From assembly GCA_002269645.1 (NCBI GenBank), contig NIVC01000434.1:248001-312000 (forward strand): a stretch of DNA of 64,000 nucleotides. The letters are read 5' to 3'. The stretch comes from Macrostomum lignano (Eukaryota). Shown here piece after piece: positions 7,680 to 63,147 of the stretch. The position numbers and the translations under genes were made by a program. The notes below the pieces were generated by a model, which worked only from the letters and a program-made list of their open reading frames with translations, was not told the origin of the DNA and ran no database searches. Within the stretch, counting starts at the first letter, position 1. Each line of letters starts with the position of its first letter.

Positions 7680-10600
7680 ATGGCTAGCAATGCTTCAGAA
7701 GCTGGTGCTGGGCCAGCTAAAGAGTCTACCAGCTATCTCAGTCCACTGTACATTTCTGTGCCTGAAAGTAGCTGGCCAATTGTCTATCATCCATCTTATA
7801 ATATCAGTTTTGCTGGCCTAGAAAAGCTTCATCCATTCGATTCGGGCAAATGGGGCAAAATTGTTGGCTTCCTGATTGAGGCTGGACTGCTGCAGCAGCA
7901 TCAGCTTGTGCAGCCACTTGAAGCGCAAGAGGCGGATTTGTTGAAAGTGCACACGGCTGACTATTTGAACTCGCTTAAGGTGCGGTTCGATTGGGCTTGT
8001 AATTTCTTGAATGTGCGAACTTTTCTCACTTCCTCTTTTCCACATTCTCTGGTGCTTTTCCCCTGTTTCCCCTTACCTGTCTCCCTCTTCGGCTCCATTC
8101 CCTTCCCCTGTCCCGTCTCTTCTTTGCCCTCCCCTCTCCCGTCTCTTCTTTGCCCTCCCCTCTCCCGTCTCTTCTTTGCCCTCCCCTCTCCCGTCTCTTC
8201 TTTGCCCTCCCCTCTCCCGTCTCTTCTTTGCCCTCCCCTCTCCCGTCTCTTCTTTGCCCTCCCCTCTCCCGTCTCTTCTTTGCCCTCCCCTCTCCCGTCT
8301 CTTCTTTGCTCTCCCCTCTCCCGTCTCTTCTTTGCCCTCCCCTCTCCCGTCTCTTCTACCTTCCCGTCTCTTCTTCCCCTCTCCCGTCTTTTTCTTTCCC
8401 CTCCCCTCCTCTCTCTCCCGTCTGTTCTTTTTCCTCCCCTCTTTTTCCCCCTTTACCTCTCCCTCTCTTTTCTCCCATCCTCTTTTCTTCTTTCCTTACT
8501 TTGTGTATTGTAAATGAATGGTTTTAGCCTGAACCACAGTATTTTATTGACCTTCTATCCATTCAAACAGTGGAGCGCTAATGTGGCCAGAGTCACGGAG
8601 GTGGGCCTAGTTGCTATGCTGCCAAATTTTATAGTGCAACGCAAAGTACTGAAACCGTTCCGATTTCATGTTGGCGGCACAGTGTTGGTGAGTTATTTCA
8701 AATTTTATTTACAATATGCCACCTATTTACTTATAGTAGCTCTGATATGATTTAGCATAATATTTTTACTATACTCTATCAAAGAAAATTTAGTTGGAAA
8801 AAGTAGTTACCATAAGGATTTTATATTATTTAAGCAGGGTTGGCACATGGCATTAACACGAGCATTGGCACCTCAACAATTTGACTTGAGCCTTGTGATC
8901 TGAGCAATTTCCCTTGAGTCCTGAAATCTATGGAATTCCATCTGAGCTTAAGAATCTGGGCCCTGAGACTTGAGATTCAAACAATTCCCTTTAAGCCTTG
9001 GGATCCGAGCGATTGCCCATGGGCCTGTATTTCATTAGTGATTTTATGAAGATTAACAATAAGCAAGTATCCATCGGTTTGAAATTAATAAGTCGCTGTA
9101 GCAATTAAAATATTTCGTGCGTTCATTGTATTTGTAGAGTTAAGTAGGTAGTAATTGAGTGCATATTCATAATTATTATTATGTTCATTCTGTCACCAAT
9201 AAAAGTACGCGACAAAAGAGAGGTCTGTTTTTACAATACTTTATAACCTTTCTCATTATCAAATTGTCATTACCTATTTGTTGCGCAACTTTAAGCAAAA
9301 AAATTCTACGAGTAACTTCAGTATGAGATGCTAAATATTAATCCAAGCGTATAGTCCCGTCACCAGATTTGTATTAGCAATTATAAGAATATGTATGGGT
9401 GACACTGGCTATTATAACATGCTTGGGCGCAACCTAGGAATTCACCCGGCCGTTTCTATTGGCAACACACACATGTAAGTGGCTATTGGACGGAATAGTA
9501 GTCACGTGACTGCTCTCAGCCAATAGCGACTTACATGTGTGTGTTGCCAATAGAAACGGCCGAGTGATTCCCAAGGTTGCGCATGTATGTAATATTATAA
9601 CATAGCCTTACTGCTTCAAATCACTCCAACTGTTCTGTAAAAAGTCACCCGATCTGGATATTGTTGAGTAAGATTGAACAAGTTCTCATTACTATTTGCC
9701 AAGTTTAAATTCGAATACCTGTGCACCGCCAAGGTGTCCTCGCTTAACTCTAAGAGTGTCCAATTTTTCTGGCGCAATTCGATGCAGCCTTGTCGTTTCT
9801 TTTCGAACCCCTGTTGTTCAGACGGAGTTGCATCCGATGGCAGATTGTCTGAAACGAAATTGAATTAAATTATTTACAGTTTTGTTAAGATAGTGTAGGT
9901 GGGATTCTACAACAGTGAGTATTTTTTTAATTTTTAACCTATTTGGTTAACAAGCACGCGAATGTGTACGCAGGCACACTTGGTGTACGTTTGTGCAATC
10001 AAGTGTAAAAACTCTTTTTCTCATTTCTCATAGCTGTTAGCTTGAAGATTTTGGCCAACTCAAAGCATGACGGTGAAAGAAAATGCCTGATTGTACGAAC
10101 ATTTTATTGGGCTTTTTCTTACTACTCTACTATCAGTAGGCTTTTGCGTAAATATTACGCAAATAAATATCGTTTCTCTTGCCGCAGAAATTTATCGACC
10201 GTGTATAATAACTATGCTCAGATGCAGATATAAGCGCGGGGCTGTCGTACTGAGTGCACTGGTGTTCAAAATCTTATTTGAAAAAAAACTGCGCCTTTCT
10301 GTGTTAGTCTTATTGGAAGACACTCACACTTTCCTTAAATTATTTGTATTTAGCAACTTTGGTTGGTGTTAAGCAAGCAGTCTGTGTTTGTTATATTCGC
10401 TTATCAGTTAGTAAAAAGCAGTTTTTTCACAATATTTATCGTCAGTTGGTGTCTAATGATTTCTTTAATTGATCGTTCAAAGATTTTTAGTTCTTCAGGA
10501 TTCAGAATATTCAAATCTAATTGTTTGGTGAATTTTTTCAAGCGATTGAGTTTAGATGGAGTACACGGGTGAGTGGATGGATCGAGACTTAATATTCAAA

Positions 10601-13600
10601 TAGCATGATGTTATTCCGCTATTGGTAGTCTCCGTTGGGTGAACAGTGGCTATAAAGTTGTCACCGGATTGAGGTCGCATTGGGCAACGCATGCGATGGA
10701 AATGGCTATATTTAATCAGATGCGCTGTTGTACCAGCTATGAATGGTTCTTAACGGGGTCTACGACTACTGACTGCCGCAATTCGACTACGTAAAAATGA
10801 CTAGACAAAATTTCGTGCATCCCTTCCTAACCACTGATAAAACTCACCGCGAAGCAGCTCCTTGCAAAAGTCGTTCCAAGGAAATGACCAATTAAGCGCC
10901 GGTCCAAAATAGTGATAGTCTCGCAGTGTACAGTTCACTTTGGGGTCATCACTAGATACTGATTTGCTATAGGCATCAAATGCAGTAGTTAGCAGTGAGC
11001 TCACATCAACTGGTTCGGTTGGCAGACTACTTAACTGCTCAATTAGATTACTGAACACTTTGTGACCTGGCGCGCCGGCCACTGCTGTTATGTCAGCTGA
11101 TTGATCAACATTTCGAACAATTTTTGATAGTTCAGGTCGTTCCGCTCCTACAAACAGGCTGATATTCGTTAGCAGCGATTCCATTGGTTTAAGACATTCC
11201 ATATCCGTGTCTAGGTAGATTCCTCCATAAACTTGCAGCACAAAGAAGCGAAATAGTTGATCCTGTTGCTGTCTGCTGGACAGTTTGCTGAACCAATCGG
11301 CGTGATGAGGATATCGAATTTCAAGAAAAGCGTCTCTGTCTTGGTCGCGCCACATGTAATATTGCCAGCCAGCATTCTGGGTTAGGCAGCTCTCTATCAA
11401 TGGTTGATAGACGATTGGAAGAATCTCACTTGGTGCGATTTGGTGAATTATTTTAGGTATGCTTGTTATTGAGTGCTCTTGAACGGACGGTAGAGATACC
11501 ATTGGCTCTTCTGATGTTTCAGATATTGTCACGGATGTTTCAGCTGAATTTTCTTGTTGAGGCGGTGGTGTAGCAGCAACTTTAATGCCTTCTATAGCAG
11601 AGTCTATGATAGAATCAGGTCTGACATCACTAGGGCTGTCTTTGCTGACTGACACAGGGATCTCCTCATTAGCTGAATTCTGATTAGTTATTTGTTCCTG
11701 TTGTATTAGGATTTCAGGTTGCTGAGCTGTGCTTTCTGGCTTGTTATACACAGGTGTTGGTTCCAGTACTTTCTCAGCTTCCACTGGCAGATCCAGGCTA
11801 TTCTCTTTGTTTTCACTATCACTGTTAATTAGCACCTCTTTCTTCGACGCTTTATCGCCGAAGTCTTCGTAAAATTCCACTTTGCTGTCGTTCAAGTCAT
11901 AGCTCGGGTCAATTTGGTAGATTATTAACTGAAACCGAAGATAGGGGCTGTTAAATACAGTTGTTAGCTTCGACATCGAAACTTTTGCACTTAGCTAATG
12001 TGCTTGTACTCGAACTTTTAATCTTCGAGTTAAGGTCTTATGATACTGCCTTGAATATTATTACCCACCCCTTAAAAAACACAGTAGAGATGGAGTTCAC
12101 TTACTACAGTGCAGATGAATACCAGCGCTAGCAGTACAGTTCTCTGCCAATAGATTCCAACATTGCTGAAGTGGCGCGTCATTCTGATTTTTTTATTGTG
12201 TCAAAAGTTTTGGAGCCCTTCGCTCAGTGTGAGTTTACTTTCTCTCAGGCTTTGGCCTCGACAAGCCCCCTACTTATCTTGTTTTTGTTTCAAAAAAAGA
12301 TTTTCTTTTCTTCCGTAGGCTTTCGTTATTGGGTAATTTTTTGGTCACAGACTTGCAAGATTAAAAGGTAGGGAATTGTTTAAAGCTGGATTTACATTGA
12401 GGGATTATCTCCTGCTTGAGTAGGGAGTTGCAGCTTATGTTGTTAATTTCTGAGCATATTTTGAGATAAAAAATCACGCTTCAGTTAAAAAAGCAAAGTT
12501 ATTTTTAAACATAAATTATTAGAAAATGTGTTGACAATATTGATTCAAACTACGACCCATTTGACTAGCTAGTATTCCTTACCAGTGACTTTAATTTACA
12601 TATTTTTTAAACTAAGGATCCAACGAACTAACGGTTAAATAGACCCAAGTAGTTTGTCACACATGTATATCAACAATTGATTTGAGCTTCTTGATGCCTA
12701 TTTCTGGGTCAATAAACAGCTACCTAAGGTACATGTCGGTAGGTAATTTGATCTAGTGACTCTATAAATTACCAATCATTAGTAAGCCAATCAAAAGCAA
12801 ATTAAATTTCGATAAATATCGGCAGTTGACGTATATTACTTTCCATACATATCGGCAGTTGACTTATATTACTTTCTATGCATATCGGCTGTTCACTTAT
12901 ATTACTTTCGATACATATCGGCAGTTTACTTATATTACTTTCGATACATATCGACAGTTGACTTATACTACTTTCGATACATAATACATATCGGCAGTTG
13001 ACTTATATTACTTTCGATAAATATCGGCAGTTGACTCATCAATCTTCAATCAATTAAACAGGCCGCCAAGCTCGCCCTAGATCGCGGCTGGGCCATCAAC
13101 ATTGGCGGCGGATTTCATCACTGCTGCGGCTACAGAGGCGGTGGATTTTGCGCCTACGCCGATATCACCATGGCTGTGAAGTTCCTGCAGCGCGGCTACG
13201 CCGGTCCGGAAAGCCAAATTCAACGGGCCATGATTGTTGACCTTGACGCTCACCAGGGCAACGGGCACGAGAGGGACTTTCTAGGCGATAAAACTGTCTT
13301 CATATTGGACGCCTACAATGTGCAAATTTATCCGGGGGACAATGCGGCCAAGCGTGAGTTACTCTGTTTGTTAACGACGGCGCAATGTGATAGGTTTCCA
13401 TGACTTATATAAGAGAAGCGCATCTTTATATAACTCTCTGATATAAGCTTCTGTGGCCCATCAATGACAGCTAAATGTGTAATCCATACATGGCAGACTC
13501 ACAATGTAGGACTGATACATGACACATTATCTAGGACCTATACGTGACAGGCACATCATCTAGAAGTCATACATGACTGGCACATGATCTAAGACCCATA

Positions 13601-14941
13601 CACGAAAGACGCATAATTTAGAGCCCATACGTGCAGCCCATGATAATTGATTACACCTGCCTTAATTGTGCAGCCGACACCTCAGCCGCAGCTATTGCGC
13701 GGCGCATCTGAAGGCTCCGTACGGCTGTTCAGTCCAAGGATTGGGGAGTTCCCACACCCTCAATTACCCCAGCTAATTCTGGTATCCATTTTACAGCTGG
13801 GTGAATTAAAGCACTGCAGAGTTAAGTGTCTTGCTCAAGGACACAAATTGTTCCAGTGGGATCGGGAATCGAACCCTCGACCTTCAAGTCGTGAGTCCGC
13901 CGCTCTAATCACTAGGTTACAACCCTTTCTATGGACATAATATATGCATATACATACAATATTCATTAGAATTCTGTCCGTATAATCAGAGCAGTTCCTA
14001 ATCTTCGCGCTTGTTGCTCCCTACCCAATCTCAGCCGCGATCAGCTGCAGTGTCGATCTCACTGCCGGAGTTGGTGACAGCGCCTACCTGGACGAAGTGT
14101 CGAAAGCTCTAGAGGAATCTCTGAACGGTTCCTTCCAGCCGCAACTGGTGCTGTACAATGCCGGTACCGACATTATGGACGGCGATCCTCTGGGACTGAT
14201 GCGAATCACTCCGAACGTGAGCCGCGGGGGGGTAGATAAAGCATTAGACATGCTGATTTTTAGTGTCTATATAGAGTGACAGGCGGATTCTTAGTGTCTA
14301 TATAGAGTGACAGGCGGATTCTTAGTGTCCATATAGATTGACAGGCGGATTCTTAGTGTCCATATAAAGTGACAGGCGGATTCTTAGTGTCCATATAAAG
14401 TGACAGGCGGATTCTTAGTGTCCATATAAAGTGACAGGCGGATTCTTAGTGTCCATATAAAGTGACAGGCGGATTCTTAGTGTCCATATAAAGTGACAGG
14501 CGGATTCTTAGTGTCCATATAAAGTGACAGGCGGATTCTTAGTGTCTATAGAGTGACAGGCAGATTCTTAGTGTCTATAGAGTGACAGGCGGATTCTTAG
14601 TGTCTATAGAGTGACAGGCGGATTCTTAGTCATAGTGTCTATAGAGTGACAGGTTGATTGCTAGTGTCTATAGAGTGATAGGTTGATTGCTAGTGTCTAT
14701 AGAGTAACGGACTGCTTGAACGCATTGTCTTAATGGTTGAAGACTGATTTTTGCCTTTTCTCAACAATCGCAGGGCATCATCAGACGCGACGAGCTAGTA
14801 TTCCAAGCCTGTCGAACACGCGGCATCCCAGTTGTCATGGTAACCAGCGGCGGTTATCAGCGCAGCAACGCGCGCGTTATTGCCGATTCGATTTTGAATC
14901 TGCGCGATAAAGGCTTGATTGAGGGTCCGACTGCCGACTGA
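7680..14941 (+). CDS. HDAC11: Histone deacetylase 11 (class IV), 352 aa, 5 exons
   Basis: Exons 7680-7979, 8571-8687, 13062-13353, 14035-14216 and 14774-14941. All introns are GT-AG and phases 0,0,1,0 join into an open frame of 1059 nt. Motifs match HDAC11 as I know it: WPIVYHPSYNISFAGLEKLHPFDSGKWGK, GWAINIGGGFHHC, GGGFCAYADIT, DLDAHQGNGHERDF, YNAGTDIMDGDPLG, MVTSGGYQ. Confidence 0.97.
8100..8360. repeat. 26-bp polypyrimidine minisatellite in HDAC11 intron 1
   Basis: The unit tttgccctcccctctcccgtctcttc is repeated about 9 times. Confidence 0.9.
9427..9582. mobile_element. 156-bp fold-back element (MITE-like)
   Basis: About 62-bp near-perfect inverted arms (gcgcaacc...ggccgtttctattggcaacacacacatgtaagt.gctattgg) enclose a GTCACGTGAC core. 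An 11-bp direct repeat tattataacat lies at 9410-9420 and 9593-9603. Confidence 0.7.
9616..12182 (-). CDS. Glycosyltransferase, GT32-like DXD sugar-binding family (OCH1/SUR1-like), type II membrane protein, 463 aa, 3 exons, nested in HDAC11 intron 2
   Basis: Exons 12182-12105, 11928-10848 and 9848-9616. Donors are GTAAGT and GTGAGT, acceptors are TTTCAG, and phases 0 and 1 are consistent. The N-terminal anchor reads MTRHFSNVGIYWQRTVLLALVFICTV|LIIYQ. Catalytic motifs: IPKIIHQ, WQYYMWRD, FRFFVLQVYGGIYLDTDMECLKP. Confidence 0.88.
12815..13036. repeat. ~33-bp minisatellite ending just upstream of the HDAC11 exon 3 acceptor
   Basis: The unit atatcggcagttgacttatattactttcgatac is repeated about 6 times. 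Confidence 0.85.
13645..13925 (-). mobile_element. tRNA-derived SINE family A (CORE-like centre), full length, in HDAC11 intron 3
   Basis: The head gggttgtaacctagtgattagag..ggttcgattccc carries A/B boxes. The centre gtgtccttgagcaagacacttaac..cagctgtaaaatgg resembles the MIR CORE domain. At least 5 copies occur in the window. Confidence 0.85.
14262..14706. repeat. 31-bp minisatellite in HDAC11 intron 4
   Basis: The unit gtgacaggcggattcttagtgtccatataaa is repeated about 14 times. Confidence 0.9.
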
Positions 14942-20067: not shown

Positions 20068-21957
20068 CTACCCTGTTTGCTGTACCAACTCGGTCGAAAT
20101 TTTGTCTACCAAGGTTCGAAGTTTCTCTTCCAGGTCAGCTTTCTCTTCACCGGCCTCGTTGATTTTCCGCTTGATAAAATGTTCAATCGTCTCCTGTTCC
20201 GGATGAAGTATCTCTAAACAGCGGTGAGCTATCACCAAGTTGTAAGCCAGTTGCTGCAGCGTCAGCTCAGCATCCTCCGACAGCTGTTGTTGAAGCCGCC
20301 TCATCCCTGCTCCGGCCCGCTCAAGTTCTATTTGGTATCTTTCGGCGACGTCGACAATTGTGATTGTTTTTTCGGTGACTACTTCTTTGAAGTTATTCTT
20401 CCTGTTTTGATGGCGTTTCCAGTGACATTCCAGTCGGCATTTTGTGCAATTTTCGTTGTGCATCGCTTCACAAAGCTCCTTTTCCTCGTCATTGCCGAAA
20501 GTGCAGCCACTATGGCATGCTTCTCCGCAATCAATGCACCAAGTAACGTTCACGTTTGTGTCGGCTTTCACAAACTCGACTATTTTTATCCGAATCGTTT
20601 TTTCTCCCTGCACCATCTGATCTTGTTGCTGCTCAGCGGAACTCTGCAGTTTGGGTATTTCGTTTTCATCAGCATTGATTGCTTGCGCCATAAGATCTTG
20701 TTGCTGTTGAATCGCAGTATGCTGCGCAAGCAGTGTAGCAGCAGTTCTAGATGATTTGTCAGCGAGTTTCTCGGTGGCCTCTGGCTTACCGTCCTCAACA
20801 CACTTTCTAAAGTGCTCTCTCTGAGCAACAATTTCGTTAGCCTGTTTGACAAAGTTATCAAAAGAAGCTATAAGCCTTTCCAATGTAAAACCACTTTCGA
20901 AACTCAACCTGTGGTGAGTTGTAATTAGGCTAGATGACTTTTCATTTCTCACATATGTCTGCCACATTCTGCTTCTATACTCCATCGTGTGTTGCTTTAG
21001 CTTATTTTGGTAGTCTTGGACGCTATCCCCAATGGAGCTTTTTAGGTTATTGACAGATATTTCATTAATAAGGCATTCAAACCTTTCCTCCGCCTCTTTA
21101 AGTTCATCCATGTAGTCACAGACCTCATCTAAATGTCTGGACGGAATGCTTGGTATTAAAGTTCTTCGCCTTCTTTGCTTGAAGTAGTCTATGGGTGTGA
21201 GGAAAATCTCGACTGGTTTGTTTGCATCTTCAGACCTTAACTTTTTTAGATACTCCAGTGCATCATCGGGGGACTTAAGAGGCTTCTTGTGAGGCTGGAA
21301 GTCAGTGTAGCATTCGCACAATTCAAAATTAGTAGAATCTGACGAATAGTCTGCTAGGCTTGAGACTTGATTCCGCAATGATTGCCCGGCATCCTCAATT
21401 AGATTTTCAATCTTTGATCTGAATGTGCTGATACTAGTGCTGGCTGAGTCCTTGAATTTCGTTTGACTTCGCCATCCCTTACATACAATGATTGCTTTAC
21501 CTCCGTATCTGATTCCAGTCACAATATGGGTTGCGGTAGTATTGTCTGGCAGGTTAATTAGATCATTTTCGTCGTCAAGGCAACAGTGAAGCTCTTCGAT
21601 GGCATTTTTAACGTCGTACTGGAACGAAAGGCTGCCTCTGCTTTGCAAGGAACTCGCTTCCGATATGTATCTTGCGGATCCTGTCCAACTCTTCTCGAAG
21701 AGCAAGCAGTTCACAGTGAATCTGAGCTCGGCACTCATTTCAAACCGTTCTACCTTTTGCTTCGCAGTCCGCTCGTAGTCAATTGAGAGTCTCACCTCTG
21801 GGGAATCGTTCCGTCGTGCGGTCATGCGCCGAATGGTTTCAGCTGGCCAAGCAGTCTTTGGTATTATTGAGTGCCGCCGGATGTCGTATAGCTGACCTAG
21901 ACGCACAGATCTGCCGAGGGTGGCCTCTCTCTCACATTTTGCCTCTGCCCACGACAT
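20068..21957 (-). CDS. Stonustoxin/verrucotoxin-like MACPF-CDC protein A (629 aa) with a C-terminal coiled coil and Cys/His-rich module; single-exon CDS
   Basis: ATG at 21957 (the ORF track's start is a GTG). SNTX-like motifs: ATLGRSVRLGQLYD, WTGSARYISE, LSFQYDVK, ATHIVTGIRYGGKAII, KPVEIFLTPI. The C-terminus has CxxCxxxCHxxC...CxxCxxxCHWxxH. AATAAA lies at about 19871-19876 (minus strand). Confidence 0.8.
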   Translation of the reverse strand: MSWAEAKCEREATLGRSVRLGQLYDIRRHSIIPKTAWPAETIRRMTARRNDSPEVRLSIDYERTAKQKVERFEMSAELRFTVNCLLFEKSWTGSARYISEASSLQSRGSLSFQYDVKNAIEELHCCLDDENDLINLPDNTTATHIVTGIRYGGKAIIVCKGWRSQTKFKDSASTSISTFRSKIENLIEDAGQSLRNQVSSLADYSSDSTNFELCECYTDFQPHKKPLKSPDDALEYLKKLRSEDANKPVEIFLTPIDYFKQRRRRTLIPSIPSRHLDEVCDYMDELKEAEERFECLINEISVNNLKSSIGDSVQDYQNKLKQHTMEYRSRMWQTYVRNEKSSSLITTHHRLSFESGFTLERLIASFDNFVKQANEIVAQREHFRKCVEDGKPEATEKLADKSSRTAATLLAQHTAIQQQQDLMAQAINADENEIPKLQSSAEQQQDQMVQGEKTIRIKIVEFVKADTNVNVTWCIDCGEACHSGCTFGNDEEKELCEAMHNENCTKCRLECHWKRHQNRKNNFKEVVTEKTITIVDVAERYQIELERAGAGMRRLQQQLSEDAELTLQQLAYNLVIAHRCLEILHPEQETIEHFIKRKINEAGEEKADLEEKLRTLVDKISTELVQQTG

Positions 21958-22464
21958 TCTCAGCTGCACTTGACGAATTCAGTAGTCACTGAAATTGAAA
22001 TTCAGGTTTTTGATGCTGTGTTGTTTTTTAGATCAATAAATAATGACATGAAATTTTTCTTGCATGCAAAACCTTCTATGATCATGTTCTGGAGAATTCA
22101 GGGACTTTAAATAATTTTAGGGTTATTTACTAGGCTAAATTCTCTCTAATTAGTAGTACTGTGAATAGCGAATGTAATTAAATAATTAAGAGCAACGCGA
22201 TGTAAAATACTCTTAGATTTTTAATTACATTTAAGTTACAAAAGGTGCTGGAACTGGAATAGCAACGTTCTAAACTACTGCCAGAGTAAATTTTGGATTA
22301 TTCCATTATGATATGGCACTATAATTCGTCACTTAATGCTATTAAACAAAAGTACATGTCCGACCTGCGTTATACATATTGTTTTAATGATATAGGAGAA
22401 GCTATAGCTACGCTCGTAGAAGTTCAGGATAAAAGTTAACCAGTCAAATCGATAGGGAAAATAC

Positions 22465-22768
22465 CATGGAGGAAAGAATAGAATGGAGTGCTAATCTGAG
22501 CCAGTTATTTTATCTCGCTCGATTTTCGCTTTTAACATCTCTTTCCCCCCGTTCCTTCCTATTGGCTGAAAGCATGATGCGAGCTCATACTATGCTGGGA
22601 CAGACCTTTCAGAGGGGAACGAAAACGAAAACGAGACGAAAAATACTTTGTCTATGGCAGTCACGAGCCAATAGGAAAGAACGGGGGGAAAGGGATGTTA
22701 AAAGTGAAGATCGAGCGAGACAAAATAACTTGCTCAGATTAGCACTCCATTCTATTCTTTCCTCCATG
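22465..22768. mobile_element. P-element-like MITE (CAT termini, 8-bp TSD)
   Basis: About 105-bp near-perfect TIRs (catggaggaaagaatagaatggagtgctaatctgagc...ttcctattggct). A perfect 8-bp TSD GAAAATAC lies at 22457-22464 and 22769-22776. Confidence 0.85.
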
Positions 22769-23088
22769 GAAAATACTTGTATGTTGCTACTATGGGTAAT
22801 AAGAAAACGACAAGCTAAAAGGAGCAGAAAAACTAAACTATAATGCGGAATATACGAGCGTACATATCTGCTGAAAAGTTGAATTGGCTATATAGCTTTG
22901 CGTGCATCCAGCAGTCTATTCGCGTATGGTCTTAGTGTCAAAATAGCAGTAATAAGTTTCATTTCTTGCTGATCCTCTAACTCCAAATTATATCAAATAG
23001 ACGAAATCTATATCTAATTACGAACGAATAGGAGTACAACATGTCACTTTATTAATGCTCAAATTAACGCTCATGAAGTCATTCGAAG

Positions 23089-24555
23089 CTAACACTCGAT
23101 TTCGAGCTCCTCCAAGGTCAGCGAGTCACCACCGCGATCGCAGTGTTCAATCGACACCCGTCTTGGCTCGTCAGGTTCCGTTTGTTCAGTCGAAGGGCCT
23201 TGCTCCGGAGTTGGGTTCTCAAAATTGTCTGCAGAAACATTTTCTTTGCTTATCCGGCGTCTCAGCTCGTGAAATTCGGAATAGAACTTCCTCTCTTCTT
23301 CTTCGTTTATCCAGAGATCAAGTTTATCCTTGAACAATTCGAAGCCAAACTTTTTAACAGGAAATGAAACCCCGTATCGTTTCTTATCGCCATTGTAGCT
23401 CAGGTTGAATCGCGTCCTCTGACTCTGGCTTGAAATGAGTTCCAGCTTTAGACGTTTAAAACTTTCAGCGATCTCCAAGAGAATCTCACTGGTAGTACAA
23501 ACTGCGATTGACCATTGCCGTCTCTTTTGGGAATAGCTTTCGGCCTTCGCGAATAGCTTGAGCAGCTGTTCCTTCTTATCACCAGCTTCGAGAAGAAAAG
23601 ACTTCACATTGTCGTCCAGGACCCTTTTTTGACGTCTGACGCTCAGGGCCTCCTCTTCCAATTTATTTGCTACTCTAAACCAAATAGTTGGTCTCAGGTC
23701 TGCGACAGCGTTATCCAGCGTTGCGATAGCTTCGTTGAGAAACTCGTAAGACTTTTGAACTTTTTCAATTATAGCTTGATGGAGTGGGGCGGGTCTCAGC
23801 TCTTTGTGAACTTCTTCGCACATCAGTGCGGAGAGTGGAGTCAGGGTGACTGTAACTGGCGATCTAGCTGCAGGACTTTTAACTTTCTGAATGCACGCCA
23901 CAGCATCGCTAAGATTTATTGGTGGACAGTCCAAGTGAAAGTCTCCTGTGTAGGTCACTCGTATCTTTTGACTGGCTTCTTTATCAGTCGTTTTCAGGTC
24001 GAGCCTGCCCGAGCCACTTAGGTTTATCAGCTTGGTTATTTTGGCTTTCAGCCCGCCCGAAGATTTTTCATCAGATATTGAGTCCGACTTGTTCAGCTCA
24101 AAGGTGAATAGGGCCGTACCGCCGTACTGGATGCCTGTGACGATATGCATTGCATCGCATATATCGCTAACGTCTCTCACACTGAGTCCGTGGGGCAGAT
24201 GAATCTCCTCGAATTCGGTTTTTGACTTGATTCGGAACGTCAGACTCTCAGTTTGGCTCGTTTGCTTGCTGTCCGTGAGGTGCCGGCCAGTGCCGCTAGC
24301 CGTGATGAAACCCGACAGAAGCGACAGAGACAGCTCACCGCTTATGTCTAGATTCTTTGCCCTGTCGGACATGGAGTTCTCTTTTACAAATTCGCACTCC
24401 ATGGAGTCGTTGCGGTGCTTACAAACCATATTCTCAAGCTCTTCGTGTGAAAAAATCTTTATTCCATGAATCAACTCATTGGTCTTTGTGTTGTACAAAG
24501 AACCCAGGGTAAACGATCGGCCTAGCCCTGGTATCCTCAGCTGAGCTGCCGACAT
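23089..24555 (-). CDS. Stonustoxin/verrucotoxin-like MACPF-CDC protein B (488 aa), no PRY-SPRY; single-exon CDS
   Basis: ATG at 24555. LRIPGLGRSFTLGSLYNTKTNELIHG parallels SNTX LVMPALGRPFTLGMLYDARREKLIPG. Further matches: LDISGELSLSLLSGFITASGTGRHL, AMHIVTGIQYGGTALFTF, VTYTGDFHLDCPP, PVTVTLTPL. A helical FAT-like region follows. AATAAA lies at 23048-23053 (minus strand). Confidence 0.9.
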   Translation of the reverse strand: MSAAQLRIPGLGRSFTLGSLYNTKTNELIHGIKIFSHEELENMVCKHRNDSMECEFVKENSMSDRAKNLDISGELSLSLLSGFITASGTGRHLTDSKQTSQTESLTFRIKSKTEFEEIHLPHGLSVRDVSDICDAMHIVTGIQYGGTALFTFELNKSDSISDEKSSGGLKAKITKLINLSGSGRLDLKTTDKEASQKIRVTYTGDFHLDCPPINLSDAVACIQKVKSPAARSPVTVTLTPLSALMCEEVHKELRPAPLHQAIIEKVQKSYEFLNEAIATLDNAVADLRPTIWFRVANKLEEEALSVRRQKRVLDDNVKSFLLEAGDKKEQLLKLFAKAESYSQKRRQWSIAVCTTSEILLEIAESFKRLKLELISSQSQRTRFNLSYNGDKKRYGVSFPVKKFGFELFKDKLDLWINEEEERKFYSEFHELRRRISKENVSADNFENPTPEQGPSTEQTEPDEPRRVSIEHCDRGGDSLTLEELEIEC

Positions 24556-24763: not shown

Positions 24764-24950
24764 GGGGTTTTAGCCTAGTAGTTAGAACGTCGGACTCATG
24801 GCTTGAAGGTTGGAGGTTCGATTCTCGATCCCCACCGGAACAATTTGTACCCTTGAGCAAGACACTTAACTCTGCATTGCTTCAGTTCACCCAGCTGTAA
24901 AATGGATACCAGCATTCGCTGGGGTAATTGAGGGTGTGTGGCGCCCCTCA
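24764..24950 (+). mobile_element. SINE family A, 3'-truncated
   Basis: It has the tRNA-like head and CORE-like centre seen at 13645-13925. Confidence 0.8.
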
Positions 24951-26089
24951 GTCATGCTTAGCAGCTTATTTTGATGGGCCGCTGGCATCAGAGCATCAGA
25001 GCGCCGCTCTAGACCACTCACTGGGTTTAAGGCAGCCCCCTCCCTGTCTGGTACTCTTGGAAACTTGGTACTCTGATTAGTTGGGTGAGAGGCCTTCTTG
25101 ACCTGCTCTTTTGAGTTTGAACACTTCTTTAGTAGATTTCCAATTTCACTTTTTGAACCGAAGCAGAAATCAAATTCGAAAGTGACGACTTACCTATTTG
25201 CTCCGGCTCGGTGTGATAAATGTGAGCTTCGGAAAAAGCCAAATTTGATCATTTAATTCTTAGTCTAGGCAAAAATCTAACCTGCTACTGAGCTGACTAA
25301 ATAATAAATAGATCAATGCTTTTTGATAAGTTGCTACTGACTGCTGCATAGCTATTGATTTAGTTCAGCGAGACCTTCGTCAACAACGCATATTCCTTGA
25401 TCGACTGGAGCCACTGCAAACATTCTGGGAAGTTAAGATCAATAAACTTTCGCTTTAAACCCAAGGACTACTACAGTCTATACGTTGCTTTAGTTGTCAT
25501 TGTTTAAACCCAGATCGCTCTTTGTATTGGTTGCATTGCAGAGATTCCCGTGCTTTCTACATGCTGGATTTATATACATGAAAGTACAAATGCACATACA
25601 ACGAGCTGAATAAAAAAAACTAATCAAGATTCAAAACATTTTATAAAAGAATTTAACTCTGTGATATAACTACATATACTCACTTTAAAAGCACCTTGAT
25701 ACCTGCCGAATAAAGAGGTCTTGTAAAGCGCTTAACGACACGCCACTGAACCGCTCTTGGAGTTTTACACTTTGTGTCGCCTTCCAACTGTCAATGTAGT
25801 CTTTTAAATAGAGCTTTATTATTTAGAAGTTCCCTTTCAAAGATGCATATGTCTTGCGGCTTTTCCACGGAAAATCCACTCATGTTGTATGAACGTTAAT
25901 TAGAAAGCAATTAATTTTCTTCGTATTCATTCTGAGCAATTCAATTGACCAGACCATTAGATCTAAATGAGAGTGCTGCGTGAAGTTGAGGACCGGCGCA
26001 CCTGGATTGAGAATAAGCAGCGTGTTGGGGCAGACGCTCTACCCCCGCACGAACCCGCGTAGCGAGTGTATATCGACGATATTTTTAGA

Positions 26090-34466: not shown

Positions 34467-35229
34467 ATATCTCATCTTTAAAAACAGACAATGAAGACGT
34501 AATGTTTGGCTTTTAAAGATTTTTTATATTTTTTTTGTTCGCTGATATGGATTGGGTGAAATTTTTGAACACATGGTTGAAATATACGCGGGAGGGGGAA
34601 TTTCACGTGCACGAACTACTTTTTGCGATTTACAGAAAAAAAAATAAAAAATCATAATTAATTGAAAAAGCATAATACGTCGTATTATTGGGGGTTGTTG
34701 AGCAAAAACGGAGTCTTTATGAGTACATGGTGAATCGCAGCTGATGACGGTATTTCTCAGTTTTTTGTAGTTTTTTAGACTTTTTTGTTTTTTTCGTAAT
34801 TTTTTTGATTTTTACTGTACAGAATAATTGTCAGTTACTTGAGTACGTTCAGAGCAAAGTACATGTGCAAAAGTTCAGTTTAAAAGTACAACATATAAGT
34901 AATTTCAGATCTGCGACAGCAGTAAATAGGTGAAGTACAAAAAGTTCTTTCGACGAATCGTACGTGCCAATTTGAAGCGTTTTTATGTTATCAAAACATT
35001 TTTTTAAAAATTATTCCTAGCATTAGACTCACCACTAAACTGTGTGTCGCAGATGCACATGTAAGCATGCATTTAAATGTTTTTATAATTAAAAAACCGA
35101 AAGTACACAAAATGTTTTATCGAGGGACACGATTGTACAATAAAGCACGAATTTAAAAAACTGAGTTAAACGGTTCCTTGTCATTTCGTCATCTGCATGG
35201 AGCTAGTGTCTTACTCGTATCCCACCCCA

Positions 35230-36135
35230 CTTCGCGCCACTTTGTCATCATGAGAGAGGAAAGGAGAGGGAATAAGAGCCGGTAGAAAATAAGAGATAAG
35301 AGAAGTGAGGAGAGGCGAGAGATGGGATGAGAGAAAAGGTAAGAGATAAGAAGAGAGAAGAGGGGGGAGAGAGGAGAAAAAAGAAGAGACATGCAGGAGA
35401 GAAAAGAGAGGGGAAAGAGAAGACGGGAGAGGAAGAAGAGGGACAGAGGAGAGAGAAGAGGTGAGAGAGGAGACGGGAGAGGGGGAGAGGAGACGAGAGA
35501 GAGAAGAGAAGAGGGGAGAGAGGAGAGAAAAGGGGAGAGAGGAGAGAAGAGGGGAGAGAGGAGAGAAGAGGGGAGAAACGAGAGAAGAGGGGAGAGATCG
35601 AGGAGAGAAGAGGAGAGAGAGGATAGAAGAGGGGAGAGAGGAGAGAAGAGGGGAGAGAGGATAGAAGAGGGGAGAGAGGAGAGAAGAGGGGAGAGAGGAG
35701 AGAAAAGGGGAGAGAGGAGAGAAGAGGGGAGAGAGGAGAGAAGAGGGGAGAGAGGAGAGAAGAGGGGAGAAAGGAGAGAAGAGGGGAGAGATCGAGGAGA
35801 GAAGAGGAGAGAGAGGATAGAAGAGGGGAGAGAGGAGAGAAGAGGGGAGAGAGGATAGAAGAGGGGAGAGAGGAGAGAAGAGGGGAGAGAGGAGAGAAGA
35901 GGGGAGAGAGAGAAGAGGGGAGAAAGGAGAGAAGAGGGGAGAGATCGAGGAGAGAAGAGGAGAGAGAGGATAGAAGAGGGGAGAGGGGAGAGAAGAGGGG
36001 AGAGAGGGGAGAAGAGGGGAGAGAAGAATACTAAACGGGCCGAATTGCGATTGTGAAGTTTCAAACGACCTGACTGCCGTATAGAGAGGCTTTGCGGCTG
36101 CATGTGGCCCACGGGCCGGAGTTTCCTGACCCCTG
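35230..36135 (-). mobile_element. hAT-like (CAGGGGTC-start) non-autonomous element carrying an expanded GGAGAGAAGAGG purine minisatellite
   Basis: The minus strand starts caggggtcaggaaactcc..tttgaaacttcacaat.gcaat.cggcccg, shared with 48695-49240. A CT-rich repeat follows. Confidence 0.6.
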
Positions 36136-36819
36136 TCCTATAGAATGAGATGAATAAATACGATGACGATCTGACCAGCAACCAACTAAACTTTTCTTTG
36201 CTACGATTCTTTCCTTCAAACTTTCAAAAGGATTGTAGGCTTACACGAAAAATACTTTAACAGAAAAATATGTTCTAGTTCGAAGCTGAAACCGAAAACA
36301 AGGATTTGTTAATCTGTTTTACAAAAACCGAAAAGAATCACATGATAAAAGCTAATTCATAAATATTGTATATGGCAATGTAAATAACAAATTGTTTTGG
36401 AACCGGGCGAAAAAAAAGTGTTGGGAATTTAAAAGATATATGAATGCTTTGAGACAAGACAATATTTGTTTAAATTTGGAATTAACCGGGTTGCCAAAGA
36501 AAAATAATTGTCGAGATAAAAAGTTTAATGACTGGATTGAATGAAAGCGTCTACCAGCTCGACAGTTTATAAAAAAAGTTGCAAAAGAATGTTAAATGAA
36601 AATTCTTTCCGCGGTGTTTATAGATACATTTCGTAATTTCGTAAATTAATCCAAAATTTGTTAGATTTTAGGGATATTGAAAAAACAATATTAAAATATG
36701 GACATAGCGCATCTGTTCTATAAAGCCATTGTACGATAATGACAATTAAAAACATGGGATTTTTCAGTCACGTTAAAAATAATAAGCTAGTAATTTATAA
36801 TAATAAAAATTGATTGCGC

Positions 36820-37005
36820 CCTAATGGGCAGAAACCGACAACTCAGCCGCAGCTATTTGCGCGGCGCATCTGAAGGCTGCGTACGGCTATTACGGCTGCG
36901 TACCTAAAGAATGGTAAGGTCTTTTTCTGTGTACTTTACGGCATACGTTCTAGGGGGTTGTGGCCTAGTGGTTAGAGCGTCGGATTCACGACTTGAAGGT
37001 CGGGT
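36820..37005. mobile_element. SINE family A fragments (3' part on -, 36820-36900; tRNA head on +, 36953-37005)
   Basis: ctcagccgcagcta..catctgaaggctgcgtacggct and gggggttgtggcctagtggttagagcgtcgg. Confidence 0.7.
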
Positions 37006-37084
37006 TAATGACAAATTAGTAATGAGACACTAACTGAGTGTGAGTGGCTGTTTACAAAGTCTAGACTAGACCGCAAATCTGGGG

Positions 37085-37498
37085 TAAAGACCCAGGGGTG
37101 GATTCTGGAGGGTAAAGACCCAGAGGTGGATTCTGATTCTGAATTGGATTCTGAAGGGTAAAGACCCAGAGGTGGATTCTGATTCTGAATTGGATTCTGG
37201 AGGGTAAAGACCCAGAGGTGGATTCTGATTCTGAATTGGATTCTGGAGGGTAAAGACCCAGAGGTGGATTCTGATTCTGAATTGGATTCTGGAGGGTAAG
37301 ACCCAGAGGTGGATTCTGATTCTGAATTGGATTCTGGAGGGTAAAGACCCAGAGGTGGATTCTGATTCTGAATTGGATTCTGGAGGGTAAAGACCCAGAG
37401 GTGGATTCTGATTCTGAATTGGATTCTGAAGGGTAAAGACCCAGAGGTGGATTCTGATTCTGAATTGGATTCTGGAGGGTAAAGACCCAGAGGTGGAA
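37085..37498. repeat. 46-bp minisatellite, about 9 copies
   Basis: Unit ggattctggagggtaaagacccagaggtggattctgattctgaatt. Confidence 0.95.
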
Positions 37499-37529
37499 GT
37501 GAAAAAAGTTTACCGATCCCTGATGTAGA

Positions 37530-37670
37530 TGGAGTAATTTTGGGTGTGTGTGGCGACCCCTCCAGTCTTTGGACTGAACAGCCGTACGCAGCCTTCAGAT
37601 GCGCCGCGCAATAGCAGCTGAACTGCTGAACTGCTGTCGGTTGCACATCAATTATTATCATTAGTATTGT
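37530..37670 (+). mobile_element. SINE family A 3' part
   Basis: ggactgaacagccgtacgcagccttcagatgcgccgcgcaatagc..gtcggttgcacatc followed by an ATT-rich tail. Confidence 0.7.
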
Positions 37671-40807: not shown

Positions 40808-41107
40808 GGGGTTGTAGCCTGGTGATTAGAGCGTCGGACTCACGACTTGAAGGTCGAGGGTTCGATTCCCGATCCCACTGGAACACTTTGTGTCCCTTGA
40901 GCAAGACACTTAACTTTGCATTGCTTCAGTGCACCCAGCTGTAAAATGGGTGCCAGCATTAGCTGGGGTAATCGACAGTGTGTGGGGACCCCCCAGTCCT
41001 TGGACTGAACAGCCGTACGCAGCCTTCAGATGCCAATAGCTGCGGCTGAGCTGTCGGTTGCACATCTGCTCATTAATAGGGCAGGTGTATAATCTATTAT
41101 TATTATT
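40808..41107 (+). mobile_element. SINE family A, full length
   Basis: tRNA head, CORE-like centre, 3' domain and (ATT)n tail. Confidence 0.88.
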
Positions 41108-47913: not shown

Positions 47914-48276
47914 GGGGGGGGCGTAGCCCAGCGGTAGCGCAGCTGCTCTGGTGTGCCAGCGACCCAGGCTCGATTCCAAGTGCAGACACATTAATTTGGG
48001 GCTGAATTGGAATCTCGGCTTGGCTCTGCTCGTGCAATTAACGGCCTTGAGAGCCAACCCCCCAAGGCGCAGTGAAGTGTACATGCCTAACGATAAAATA
48101 AAGTTAGGGCCGCTGTACACTCCTGTGTGAGTGTGTGCCTGCGTACGTATCCGCGCGCTTGTATGCCTGCTCAGGGGAGTCGGCGGAATGGGCAGTAATG
48201 CCTCTCGCCGGTTGTGTGCCTATGTCGCTTAAAGTGCGCCAGGGTGCACACAACCCCCCTGCCTCTAAAAAAAATA
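47914..48276 (+). mobile_element. SINE family B with a 13-bp TSD
   Basis: TSD atcctactgccag at 47901-47913 and 48277-48289. A-rich tail. Confidence 0.85.
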
Positions 48277-48286
48277 ATCCTACTGC

Positions 48287-48678
48287 CAGTGGCGTAGCCA
48301 GGAATTTCAATTGATGGGGCGGCGGGTTGGCCTGGCTGGCCATGCCTTATTCCATTGCCACTTTTGGCGCCGCAGGCACTCATTTTGGCGTCGCAGACAC
48401 TCATTTTGGCGTCGCAGGCACTCATTTTGGCGTCGCAGGCACTCATTTTGGCGCCGCAGGCACTCATTCTGGCGCCGCAGGCACTCATTCTGGCGCCGCA
48501 GGCACTCATTTTGGCGTCGCAGGCACTCATTTTGGCGTCGCAGGCACTCATTCTGGCGCCGCAGGCACTCATTTTGGCGCCGCAGGCACTCAATTGCCTC
48601 GTGGTTTTTGGTACCCGCCACGCCCAACCCTCCCCCAGGCGATTGGGGGGGCCGCCCCCCCCCCTGGCTACGCCACTG
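48287..48678. mobile_element. hAT-like MITE containing a 21-bp tandem array
   Basis: TIRs cagtggcgtagccagg / cctggctacgccactg are perfect over 16 bp. The 8-bp flanks cctactgc / gctactgc match at 7 of 8. The internal unit ggcgccgcaggcactcatttt is repeated about 11 times. Confidence 0.85.
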
Positions 48679-48694
48679 GCTACTGCTATCATTA

Positions 48695-49240
48695 CAGGGG
48701 TCGACAAACTCCAGTCACCGAGCCACATATGGCCCGCCAAGCCTCTTTTCTTTATCCCTCTCGGGTCCTTTGAAACTTCACAATAGCAATCCGGCCCGCT
48801 CAGAGTTTGTGTTTCTTCTCAGCTGTCTCATCTCTTCTCCCCTCTTCCTTCTCCCCTCTCCCTTCTCCCCTCTCCCTTCTCCCCTCTCCCTTCTCCCCTC
48901 TCCTTTCTCCTCTCTCTCTTCTCCCCTTTACTTTCTCCCCTCTCCTTTCTCCAATCTCCTTTCTCCCCTCTCCCTTCTCCTCTCTCTCTTCTCCCCTTTA
49001 CCTTCTCCCCTCTCCTTTCTCCAATCTCCATTCTCCCATCTCCCTTCTCTGCTCTCCCTTCTCCCTTCTCCCCTCTCCTTTCTCCCCTCTCCCTTCTCCG
49101 CTCTCCCTTCTTCCCTCTCCCATCTCCTCTCTACCTTTTCCCCTCTCCCTTCTCCCCTCTCCCTTCTCCCCTCCTCTAGCACGCAGTCATGCGCTAAATT
49201 CTCCATCTGGCCCTTTAGATAAAAAGTTTGCTAGCCCCCA
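48695..49240 (+). mobile_element. hAT-like (CAGGGGTC) element with a CT-rich minisatellite, related to 35230-36135
   Basis: The 5' ~110 bp are shared with the 36135 copy. The 3' end ggccctttagataaaaagtttgctagcccc is degenerate. Confidence 0.6.
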
Positions 49241-50806
49241 CTCTATTGGATTAGTACAAAGTGGTGCAGGATCAGCGACGAGACGAGATGGTGAAGACCG
49301 GATACTGTCCCGAGGGCTATAATGTCAAAGTTTGACTTGAGAAGGCAACCCTCATCATGAATATTTATTACTAAATTAAAACCGCTTTAAAACGCAGATT
49401 TGTCAAATACTACTCAAGGCATAAAGTTAGTAGGGTAACAGCAGGCTGCGCCTGTTTCTGAAACATTATTTTTAACGGAGTGAAGGAAATAAAAGCAGGC
49501 AGATGAACTCAAGACGAGACAAGAGAGAAACTAAGAAAAACAGGTTAGCACGTACGGAGTGCAGTCCACAGGCATCAATCTGCTGTGAAGTCAGCTGCTA
49601 CTGAGATGAAGCGCCCCATTACCCCTCCCCCCCTGGTCCTTCTCACTGCATTGTCTTACCATTTTCATTATGCGAGATACTGCACTGCATCGCACTGTGC
49701 AGTGTTGCAACCAGAAATTTGGCAAGAGGAGGGAGGGGTGGGGCCTGTGTCGGTCGGCGAGAGTTTGCTTGGGCCTTCGCCAATTACAGTTTTTTGGGCG
49801 GCTGCCCCCCCCCCCTCCCCGCCCTCTGGCTTCGCCTCTGTACTGTAGCGACCTCCACCCACCCACCCACCGACTCCACATTCGCGGCCCTTCAGGAAGA
49901 AAACTAAAGCGTAATTTTTACTGCCCCGTTAATTTCTGCCTATGAAAGTTCCTTTTTAAATATTGTACATTAGCAGTGTTAAAATTAACAACAAAAATGT
50001 GCAGTGGCAGCTTTAGAGGGTATGGGGGGTGAGCAGTGCATTCTGGCACTCACAAAACACTAGCAGAACTTGCTGCAACCCCTGACCCCCCTCTACCGCC
50101 CGGCCCCACCCCAACCCCAAGCACCAACACCCCTGCCCGTGTCGGCATTGCCTGCCAGACACTGAGACAACCTGTGAAGTGAATAAGATCGAAAACCATT
50201 TCAATTAAAACAAATAAAAAGTACAAATCATACATTTTGAAAAGTAATCCATTTTTCATTTTTTCACAGATGAATACCGGTTCTTGTCTAATGAAATAAA
50301 AATTATCCAGTATCCTCATAAGTCATTACATAAAAACAGCTGGGGTAGAACTGGATTTTTGCCCCGGCTTTGCCATGGCAATTCCACGGGTTCACCGAGG
50401 GCTGTCCTGCTATTGAATGCAGGCGGAGACGGCAATTCCATGCGAAAGAAAATTTAACATTAATTTTGTGAATTCTAACAATCTTCCAGCCAAAAAATCC
50501 ATCTGCATCACGGTTCAAAATTAACTATATTCGAATTTTTAATTTGTCAAAGAAGCTAATTTGCGTTATTGAAAGCTACGAGGAGCAAATTTTTCGCTCG
50601 TAAAACATGCGATCGGCAGACAACATGAGCACCCTGTACTTTGCAACAAGCCGGTGTCATCCAAGACTGCAGCAGCAGCTGCAACAGAGGCAACAGTGCT
50701 CAACATATTTCTGCGTGAACACTACGAATTCGAAAACTGTGGAAAATGCACAATGAACAGGTAATAAAAGCAGGAGCAGCGGCCGGCGGGTAAAACGGAA
50801 AGAGTG

Positions 50807-62410: not shown

Positions 62411-62895
62411 GCCAGGGAGTCACTGCAACCGAACTGCTGCCGCCATACACCGAGAAAGTTGACGCTGTCGCTCGTTTTGCACCGCCCGCCACCGTCAAGG
62501 GCCTGCAGGAGTTCGCCTGCATGGTAAACTTCTACCATCGCTTTATGCCGCGAGCCGCCCAGCTACTGCGCCCCAATCATGTGGCTACTGCTGGAAAAGG
62601 CAAACTGGTCCGTTGGAAACCCGAGCTGACGGCCGCGTTAAACAATGCTAAGCAGGCCCTGGCAGGTGCGGCAATGCTGGGGCACCCACTGCCAAAGGCG
62701 CCGATCGGCCTGACCGTGGACGCTTCTGACATCGCGATTGGTGCCGCTCTGGAGCAGCGAGTTGGCAACGGCTGGCAACAGCTGGCTTTCTTCAGTCGCC
62801 AGCTCCGTGCTCCGGAGCAGAAATACAGTGCTTTCGACCGCGAGTTGCTAGCCTTGTACCTGGCTGTCCGGCACTTTCGCTACTTTCTAGAAGGT
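62411..62895 (+). mobile_element. Ty3/Gypsy RT-connection + RNase H remnant, inverted relative to the integrase
   Basis: EKVDAVARFAPPATVKGLQEF.CMVNFYHRF, LTVDASDIAIGAALEQ, LAFFSRQL and YSAFDRELLALYLAVRHFRYFLEGR. Confidence 0.92.
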
Positions 62896-63147
62896 CGGGT
62901 CGGAGGTCGGAGGGTCGGATATAAAAAACAATTGATAGAAATATTAAACCAGCTTTAAGATTGCTTTGTGCATCTCTGTGTACATTGAATGATTCTTGCC
63001 ATAGACAAAAGCAACTTTAATGCTGTGGTTATGTATCAGATTAAACATGCCTTTTGAGGGAGTTATTTGTATATATCACGAGGGCCTGAGGCCCGAGGGA
63101 TTTATGAAAATAACTCCCGAAAAAGGCATGTGTAATCTCGTATAAAC

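Follow-up and report, generated by a model that had tools for sequence, protein, structure and literature searches.

Stonustoxin is an alpha/beta dimer of four-domain subunits (PMC8704401, PMC10566576). In stonustoxin and (neo)verrucotoxin of scorpaeniform fish (PDB 4WVM), an N-terminal MACPF/CDC domain is followed by a helical domain of the focal-adhesion-targeting type, there is no signal peptide, and the two paralogous genes lie side by side. Stonustoxin (SNTX)-like transcripts have also been reported from invertebrates, namely from Glycera venom glands, nemerteans and cerianthids, and these have neither a signal peptide nor a B30.2/SPRY domain. Those from Glycera, described in 2014, form two clades, which their authors thought might represent different subunits (PMC4202326), and similar transcripts were present in nine of the nine nemerteans examined (PMC4986456). 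The invertebrate reports are all at the transcript level and carry no genomic linkage. Here, we describe a genomic pair of such genes, denoted A and B, in a 64,000-nucleotide (nt) stretch of the genome of the flatworm Macrostomum lignano (contig NIVC01000434.1), referred to below as the window. A and B share with the fish toxins the order of the first two domains, the missing leader and the side-by-side arrangement of paralogous genes, and comparison with a second locus in the same genome shows, by sequence, that the A-then-B unit was duplicated long ago as a block. An earlier sequence-only reading of the window had correctly placed the pair in an invertebrate; the high novelty that it implied must be scaled back, since leaderless, SPRY-less stonustoxin-like genes in two clades are already known in annelids.

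The two genes consist of intact single-exon open reading frames (ORFs) that are arranged head to tail on the minus strand. The coding sequences and their associated signals are as follows:

23089..24555, minus strand: coding sequence of gene A, 488 residues plus TAG, from ATG (MSAAQLRIPGLGRSF...), encoding a short stonustoxin-like protein
20068..21957, minus strand: coding sequence of gene B, 629 residues plus TAG, from ATG (MSWAEAKCEREATLGRSV...), encoding a long stonustoxin-like protein
23048..23053, minus strand: AATAAA of A, 35 nt past the A stop codon
19871..19876, minus strand: AATAAA of B, 191 nt past the B stop codon
24582..24594, minus strand: two candidate splice acceptors of A (ttactAG and aaattAG), 26 and 37 nt upstream of the ATG, as read from the sequence
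21989..21990, minus strand: candidate splice or trans-splice acceptor of B (ttcaatttcAG), 31 nt upstream of the ATG, likewise read from the sequence

The two head-to-tail frames, each with its own AATAAA, were thus found as originally described, the one correction being their placement on the minus strand. The spacer between the A stop codon and the B ATG is 1131 nt long, and each ATG is preceded by an in-frame stop codon, at a distance of 39 nt in A and 24 nt in B. By a simple calculation, an open frame of 488 or 629 codons would arise by chance with a probability of about 1e-10 or less. Because good candidate acceptors lie close to both ATGs, both genes probably have a non-coding exon further upstream or receive a leader by trans-splicing. 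The description of the genes as intronless therefore stands for the coding sequence and is limited to it. As had been claimed, the two proteins are strongly diverged, 27% of residues being identical across the first 250 (E = 1e-16), compared to about 50% between the fish alpha and beta subunits (PMC10566576). There is no third stonustoxin-like copy in the window. The A–B spacer also holds a 306-bp element (22464-22769) with terminal inverted repeats of 104 nt that are 94% complementary and separated by 98 nt; it is present as a single copy in the window and resembles a miniature inverted-repeat transposable element or a long hairpin.

By sequence homology and predicted fold, A and B are shown to be leaderless paralogues in the stonustoxin branch of the MACPF/CDC superfamily. 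In phmmer searches against the PDB, A matched stonustoxin beta (E = 6.1e-31) and alpha (E = 5.5e-29) across the MACPF and helical domains, while B matched beta with E = 6.8e-15 and alpha with E = 6.7e-9. The top Pfam match for both proteins was PF24674 (MACPF_SNTX), at 18.1 bits for A and 21.4 bits for B, relative to a gathering score of 27 bits. This model is insensitive for the present clade, because undoubted multi-domain family members (P0022 at 20.7 bits and P0003 at 20.3 bits) also fall below the cut-off. AlphaFold models of the A and B monomers, built on family alignments, had a mean predicted local distance difference test (pLDDT) score of 75 for A, with a predicted template modelling (pTM) score of 0.69, and of 72.5 for B. 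When the models were compared to the PDB with Foldseek, the best match in both cases was chain B of stonustoxin (4wvm_B). For A, this match had E = 3e-18 and a query-normalised TM-score of 0.59; for B, E was 8e-15. The top matches included 4wvm_A, followed by TgPLP1, MPEG-1, perfringolysin O, pneumolysin, C8, C9 and perforin. Stonustoxin is thus the best match to both proteins in sequence and in fold, and the stonustoxin-like MACPF/CDC fold that had been proposed, in which a bent central beta-sheet lies between two helical clusters (TMH1 and TMH2), was recovered by both routes.

All three of the SNTX motifs noted previously are present in both proteins: LGRSFTLGSLY (residues 11-21), HIVTGIQYGG (137-146) and PVTVTLTP (233-240) in A, and LGRSVRLGQLY (14-24), HIVTGIRYGG (144-153) and PVEIFLTP (248-255) in B. 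The HIVTGIxYGG motif is the stonustoxin form (A-T-H-V-V-x4-Y-G-A/G) of the MACPF signature, for which the general pattern is [YW]-G-[TS]-H-[FY]-x6-G-G. In alignments of 34 and 28 sequences, the histidine and the first glycine of this H-x7-GG signature were invariant, corresponding to H137 and G145 in A and to H144 and G152 in B. No hydrophobic leader and no membrane span were seen in either protein, the highest Kyte-Doolittle mean over 19 residues being 1.06 in A and 0.86 in B, and neither has a Pfam match to PRY-SPRY, thioredoxin-like, FN3 or GTPase domains. Hydropathy and Pfam thus agree with the previous statement that signal peptide and PRY-SPRY are missing. Furthermore, the window as a whole gave no sign of remnants or further exons for thioredoxin-like, FN3, GTPase or SPRY domains in tblastn searches with full-length relatives. 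Since A and B lack two of the four domains of stonustoxin, the thioredoxin-like and PRY-SPRY domains, they fall outside a strict definition of stonustoxin-type cytolysins; they do belong to the wider SNTX-like branch. Another difference from stonustoxin is that the two proteins do not share one architecture. The parts of A are as follows:

23782..24555, minus strand: MACPF/CDC domain of A (residues ~1-258), delimited by AlphaFold secondary structure and the SNTX alignment
24253-24384, minus strand: first membrane-hairpin region (TMH1) of A (residues 58-101)
24118-24153, minus strand: MACPF signature of A, AMHIVTGIQYGG
23962-24090, minus strand: second membrane-hairpin region (TMH2) of A (residues 156-198)
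23401..23781, minus strand: helical (focal-adhesion-targeting-like) domain of A (residues ~259-385)
23092..23400, minus strand: acidic C-terminal tail of A, predicted to be disordered (residues 386-488, isoelectric point 4.8)

A was shown to be a minimal form, in which the pore-forming domain is followed by a helical domain and then by an acidic tail that is predicted to be disordered. The alignment with SNTX-alpha reaches residue 394, and the helical domain was modelled as helices at residues 260-287, 293-323 and 328-368 with pLDDT values of 85-94; the corresponding Pfam family, PF21109, was not among the Pfam matches of A or B. Relatives were collected by an exhaustive HMMER search with B, which gave 759 matches, and 160 proteins were retrieved for the counts given here and below. 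The MACPF domain of A was nearest to M. lignano PAA80612.1 and PAA60539.1 (E = 6e-49) among these proteins, while the tail, in which the pLDDT drops below 50 at residues 400-421 and 438-488, had no homologue among them. Both TMH1 and TMH2 of A display the alternating pattern of a beta-hairpin, with an amphipathic periodicity within the range of the family. B is longer and more complex:

21148..21957, minus strand: MACPF/CDC domain of B (residues ~1-270)
21499-21534, minus strand: MACPF signature of B, ATHIVTGIRYGG
21322-21471, minus strand: atypical TMH2 region of B (residues 163-212)
20788..21147, minus strand: helical (focal-adhesion-targeting-like) domain of B (residues ~271-390)
20608..20787, minus strand: long single helix or coiled coil of B (residues 391-450; helix at 393-446 in the AlphaFold model)
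20323..20607, minus strand: Cys/His-rich, beta-rich module of B, probably zinc-binding (residues 451-545, pLDDT 76-87)
20071..20322, minus strand: C-terminal helical region of B (residues 546-629; helices at 550-584, 591-602 and 604-628)

The alignment of B with SNTX-beta extends up to residue 356, and helices were predicted at residues 273-302, 308-336 and 359-388. The coiled coil that follows is homologous to the helix preceding the Cys-rich module in GTPase-containing relatives, many relatives having matches that start at B residues 401-436. The C-terminal helical region is conserved together with the module and contains, in the relatives, a recognisable '...RL..IAL...PL....YI..LI' block. 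The proposal that A and B carry different targeting domains is therefore only half right: B has an extra conserved module, and A ends in the disordered tail.

The hairpin regions of the two proteins were compared by a crude measure of amphipathic periodicity, expressed as the share of windows that favour a beta pattern. For TMH2, this share was 0.17 in B and 0.29 in B', the closest relative of B (described below), relative to a family median of 0.61 and an interquartile range of 0.48-0.72; the beta moment of the region in B is at the 7th percentile of the family. TMH1 of B was within the family range. In the AlphaFold model of B, TMH2 had pLDDT values below 50, and a helix-like segment around 'I(E/R)DAGQS' is conserved between B and B'. 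These data suggest that the second membrane-hairpin region has been remodelled in the B lineage, and A and B would therefore make an asymmetric pair, rather than a symmetric one like stonustoxin.

The Cys/His-rich module is defined by ten residues, C474, C477, C481, H482, C485, C496, C504, C507, C511 and H516 in B, that constitute invariant columns in alignments of 37 and 28 sequences, with all ten present in B. The resulting pattern, T-x-C-x2-C-x3-C-H-x2-C...C-x-A-M...C-x2-C-x3-C-x-W-x2-H-x-N, has no counterpart in A. Nothing in Pfam matched the module significantly, the only hits being weak matches to C1_1 in three of 37 members, and no PDB sequence matched it above noise. A word-indexed protein search gave two matches for A and none for the Cys-module alignment. 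The exhaustive search, in contrast, revealed many relatives of 1100-1300 residues that match B twice, once at the N-terminus, in the MACPF domain, and again near the C-terminus. In Pfam, these long proteins are laid out as MACPF_SNTX, Stonustoxin_helical, Thioredoxin_11, fn3 and an AIG1/septin-like GTPase, followed by a C-terminal part without Pfam assignment. It is this last part that corresponds to B residues 391-629, with its long helix, beta-rich module and helical end.

The module region was matched by 92 of the 160 retrieved proteins. MACPF, P-loop and module occurred together in 49 of the 160; in another 11, MACPF and module were present and no Walker A motif was found by pattern, some of them being truly GTPase-less, such as a turtle 'stonustoxin subunit alpha'; and a further 11 had P-loop and module, with no MACPF domain. 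GTPase-containing members include M. lignano PAA80612.1 and PAA60539.1, XP_068232724.1 of the shrimp Palaemon, XP_051781755.1 of bichir and XP_066566466.1 of bowfin, and the module is also present in the GTPase-less turtle protein XP_043394780.1. The family is modular, as judged from its sequences, and the module appears as the tail of a widespread, unstudied family in which a variable N-terminal effector is followed by a GTPase and the Cys-rich module. No P-loop GTPase (Walker A G-x4-GK[ST], DTPGFGD) was found in A or B by Pfam, nor anywhere in the window. Sequence comparison thus shows B to be a stonustoxin-type N-terminal half joined directly to the tail of the GTPase family: its coiled coil, module and terminal helices are homologous to the C-terminal part of the ~1200-residue SNTX-GTPase proteins, but the helical domain runs straight into this post-GTPase part, without the thioredoxin-like, FN3 and GTPase domains in between. 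A, unlike the ~1200-residue proteins, ends after the helical domain and its acidic tail. Other arrangements were seen among the relatives. Some MACPF-less module proteins (in the set P0088, P0089 and P0004) start with a trypsin-like protease or a SAM domain, and in one protein of 2668 residues the stonustoxin MACPF, helical and thioredoxin-like domains were each matched three times, in addition to galectin and FN3 domains.

A second pair of genes was found elsewhere in the M. lignano genome. In the exhaustive search, the best database relative of B was M. lignano PAA47042.1 (38% identity, E = 3.6e-110). The gene most similar to B is M. lignano Mlig004669 (P0003, P0153 and P0154), here denoted B', which aligns to B with 36% identity (E = 3e-117). 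It is found on three M. lignano contigs (L001, L002 and L003), and on each of them an A-like ORF without annotation, A', lies ~1.1 kb upstream of Mlig004669 on the same strand, and is 37% identical to A over A residues 6-425 (E = 7e-87). Order and orientation are the same as in the window, and the spacer is 1118 nt, compared to 1131 nt between A and B. The three contigs are 99.8-99.9% identical to each other and therefore represent one paralogous locus. We considered the possibility that the Mlig004669 loci were orthologues from another species; this was rejected, as a neighbouring gene in the window is 100% identical to M. lignano, and the loci are paralogous. In a neighbour-joining tree of 97 MACPF-plus-helical regions, all 300 bootstraps joined A to A', all 300 joined B to B', and none of the 300 joined A to B; the tree distances were nearly the same for the two pairs (1.09 for A/A' and 1.04 for B/B'). 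The split between A and B is therefore older than the duplication, which copied the two genes together. On this sequence evidence, the A-then-B unit is shown to have been duplicated long ago as a block, with both members persisting at the second locus.

The start of B' has a layout similar to that of B. The annotated 'partial' model of B' begins 1 nt after a tttcAG acceptor that precedes the ATG by 25 nt (L001 9990-10025), which fits a transcript-derived model, and in B (window 21958-21990) there is likewise an acceptor shortly upstream of the ATG. The sequences suggest that splice or trans-splice acceptors set short 5' untranslated regions in both genes.

We tentatively favour a reading in which A and B cooperate as an asymmetric two-component membrane-attack module that serves endogenous defence or cell death rather than as a classical venom, while considering its chances to be below even. 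In such a module, A would supply the canonical hairpins and oligomerise into the pore, and B would target, regulate or nucleate the assembly by means of its coiled coil and Cys-rich module. This logic would be nearer to complement C5b-8/C9 or to bacterial two-component CDC-like toxins than to the symmetric alpha/beta dimer of stonustoxin. An A-type/B-type pair at a second locus that is ~63% diverged, together with an A/B split predating the duplication, offers indirect support for A and B working together, and the heterodimer idea is plausible and slightly strengthened. An obligate alpha/beta-like heterodimer would go beyond these data, and the predicted properties of TMH2 in B point to an asymmetric pair.

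Several observations weigh against cooperation between A and B. The frame of A' is intact over 477 codons, but none of the three contig copies offers an in-frame ATG. The single ATG close by is shifted by one base relative to the frame, and an in-frame TGA lies between the two (L001 7440-7520, and also in L002 and L003). A start codon donated by a spliced leader was considered and rejected, since no AG follows the in-frame stop. A' may be a recent pseudogene, share an assembly error or use an unusual start, and the A'–B' 'pair' may no longer be functional, which would weaken the case for both members being needed. M. lignano also has two solitary full-length family genes (P0005 and P0006), the closest relatives of the A MACPF domain among the retrieved proteins. 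Neither of these genes nor that of the turtle relative has a neighbour within 10 kb, and pairing is therefore not a rule of the family. A and B appear to be unannotated genes, with no annotated gene matched in exact look-ups of protein collections. The amphipathicity measure applied to TMH2 is crude, and the survival of a tandem arrangement through a segmental duplication requires no functional coupling.

The strongest alternative is that A and B are independent tandem paralogues, each homo-oligomeric or working with other partners, and that A'–B' is just a by-product of segmental duplication. We regard this as only slightly less likely than cooperation. In fish, the family usually grows by tandem duplication (PMC10566576), and no shared regulatory sequence was detected between the A–B and A'–B' spacers. 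Solitary members exist in the same genome, and the missing start of A' next to an annotated B' indicates that the members of a pair can differ in fate. However, both members are still long open frames at both loci, in spite of the ~63% protein divergence, and equal A/A' and B/B' distances go together with retained order, orientation and spacing. The two types are also complementary, A having no C-terminal module and B having the module and an atypical TMH2.

As to where the proteins act, the lack of a leader and the effector-NTPase-sensor architecture of the family make endogenous defence, cell death or release on rupture most likely, and a classically secreted venom role for A and B less likely. 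The proposed module might thus act in defence against intracellular or ingested microbes, as an executor of cell death, or after release from broken cells. A further alternative is a released toxin that gland or epidermal cells would store for defence or for use on prey or competitors, and that would be freed by cell rupture or another non-classical route, as stonustoxin is from the venom glands of stonefish. The fish stonustoxins and the Glycera homologues are leaderless and yet present in venom (PMC4202326). Against this, the module in B derives from an intracellular-looking, GTPase-associated architecture, rather than from a lectin or other extracellular binding domain, and the absence of A and B from annotated protein sets argues against very high expression. 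In addition, M. lignano, a small flatworm, feeds by grazing diatoms and is not known to have a venom apparatus. We consider a released toxin improbable. A similarly small chance attaches to the notion that one or both proteins are non-lytic, with regulatory, scaffolding or developmental roles (cf. astrotactins and BRINPs), or are products of silent, decaying genes, which would fit the helical-amphipathic pattern of TMH2 in B, the missing annotation of A and B, the broken start of A' and the Pfam scores below the gathering threshold, but both ORFs are intact, the family-invariant residues and the MACPF signature are kept, both hairpin regions of A look canonical, and bona fide multi-domain members such as P0022 score below the threshold as well.

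The favoured asymmetric module resembles known two-component MACPF/CDC systems, complement C5b-8 with C9 and the long and short CDC-like proteins of Bacteroidota (PMC11169675), in its proposed logic only. In each case, an accessory or targeting component would nucleate assembly and a simpler component would supply most of the hairpins. Homology to A and B is limited to the shared fold (Foldseek E = 1e-4 to 1e-2), and their cooperation is what we infer. In the literature searched, we found no flatworm case and no description of a genomic A/B unit or of its ancient block duplication. Nor did we find a description of the architecture of B, or of its tail as the conserved end of a large GTPase-containing family, or any mention of Mlig004669 or work joining Macrostomum with stonustoxin or MACPF proteins.

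The remainder of the window contains other genes and repeats. A GT32/DXD glycosyltransferase, the N-terminal half of which is long and of low complexity, is encoded by an ORF at 10801-11976 on the minus strand. It matches, at 100% identity, a UniRef protein of M. lignano that carries the annotation alpha-1,4-N-acetylglucosaminyltransferase, and this match identifies the window as DNA of that free-living flatworm; an exact look-up of the protein found no annotated gene. At 7680-~7976 on the plus strand is the probable first coding exon of a histone-deacetylase gene, read as HDAC11-like; its match to Pfam Hist_deacetyl is below the gathering score, and the frame continues into a tract of proline/serine/leucine-rich repeats. 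A dispersed repeat resembling a tRNA-derived short interspersed nuclear element is present in copies that are 80-89% identical, at 13644-13860, 24838-24951, 36778-36891, 37526-37649, 40874-41067 and 56743-56966. Gene A has one copy immediately upstream, and another is located in the A'–B' spacer (L001 ~9268-9486), and the repeats of the window also occur on other M. lignano contigs. ARAGORN found no intact tRNA in the window. Retroelement fragments are located near both ends: gag-like and reverse-transcriptase-like ORFs at 943-2898 on the minus strand, in a left-end block of 51-62% guanine plus cytosine, and integrase zinc-binding, integrase core and RNase H pieces on both strands at 61624-62958. 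Satellite-like low-complexity tracts at ~8000-8520, 35190-36180, 37000-37660, 48170-49320 and 54070-54950 are open in several frames (SPL-rich, ER-rich, 'MSACGAK' and 'PPFQQAWR' repeats) and are probably tandem repeats rather than genes.

Stonustoxin-like relatives of perforin are present in many non-venomous animals. The 2015 stonustoxin structure paper reportedly proposed a wide distribution of the family and a possible immune role. The most far-reaching form of our proposal is that A/B and A'/B' make up an obligate asymmetric cytosolic pore system, in which the putative zinc-binding module of an AIG1/septin-like GTPase family of immune type would direct or license a perforin-like pore against pathogen membranes or for cell suicide. 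We consider this form the most doubtful of the readings discussed here. If true, it would be a flatworm MACPF-based counterpart of intracellular defence of the gasdermin or guanylate-binding protein (GBP) type, and it would provide the first function for a large SNTX-GTPase-Cys-rich family across Metazoa. If A and B form a two-component system as such, complement-like asymmetric assembly would be extended to the stonustoxin branch; if not, they represent another tandem duplicate of a known family. M. lignano is a tractable laboratory flatworm, with transgenesis, RNA interference and transcriptome resources. In this animal, the minimal A + B pair is a simple system in which to ask whether leaderless MACPF proteins act inside cells, and what the Cys-rich module does.

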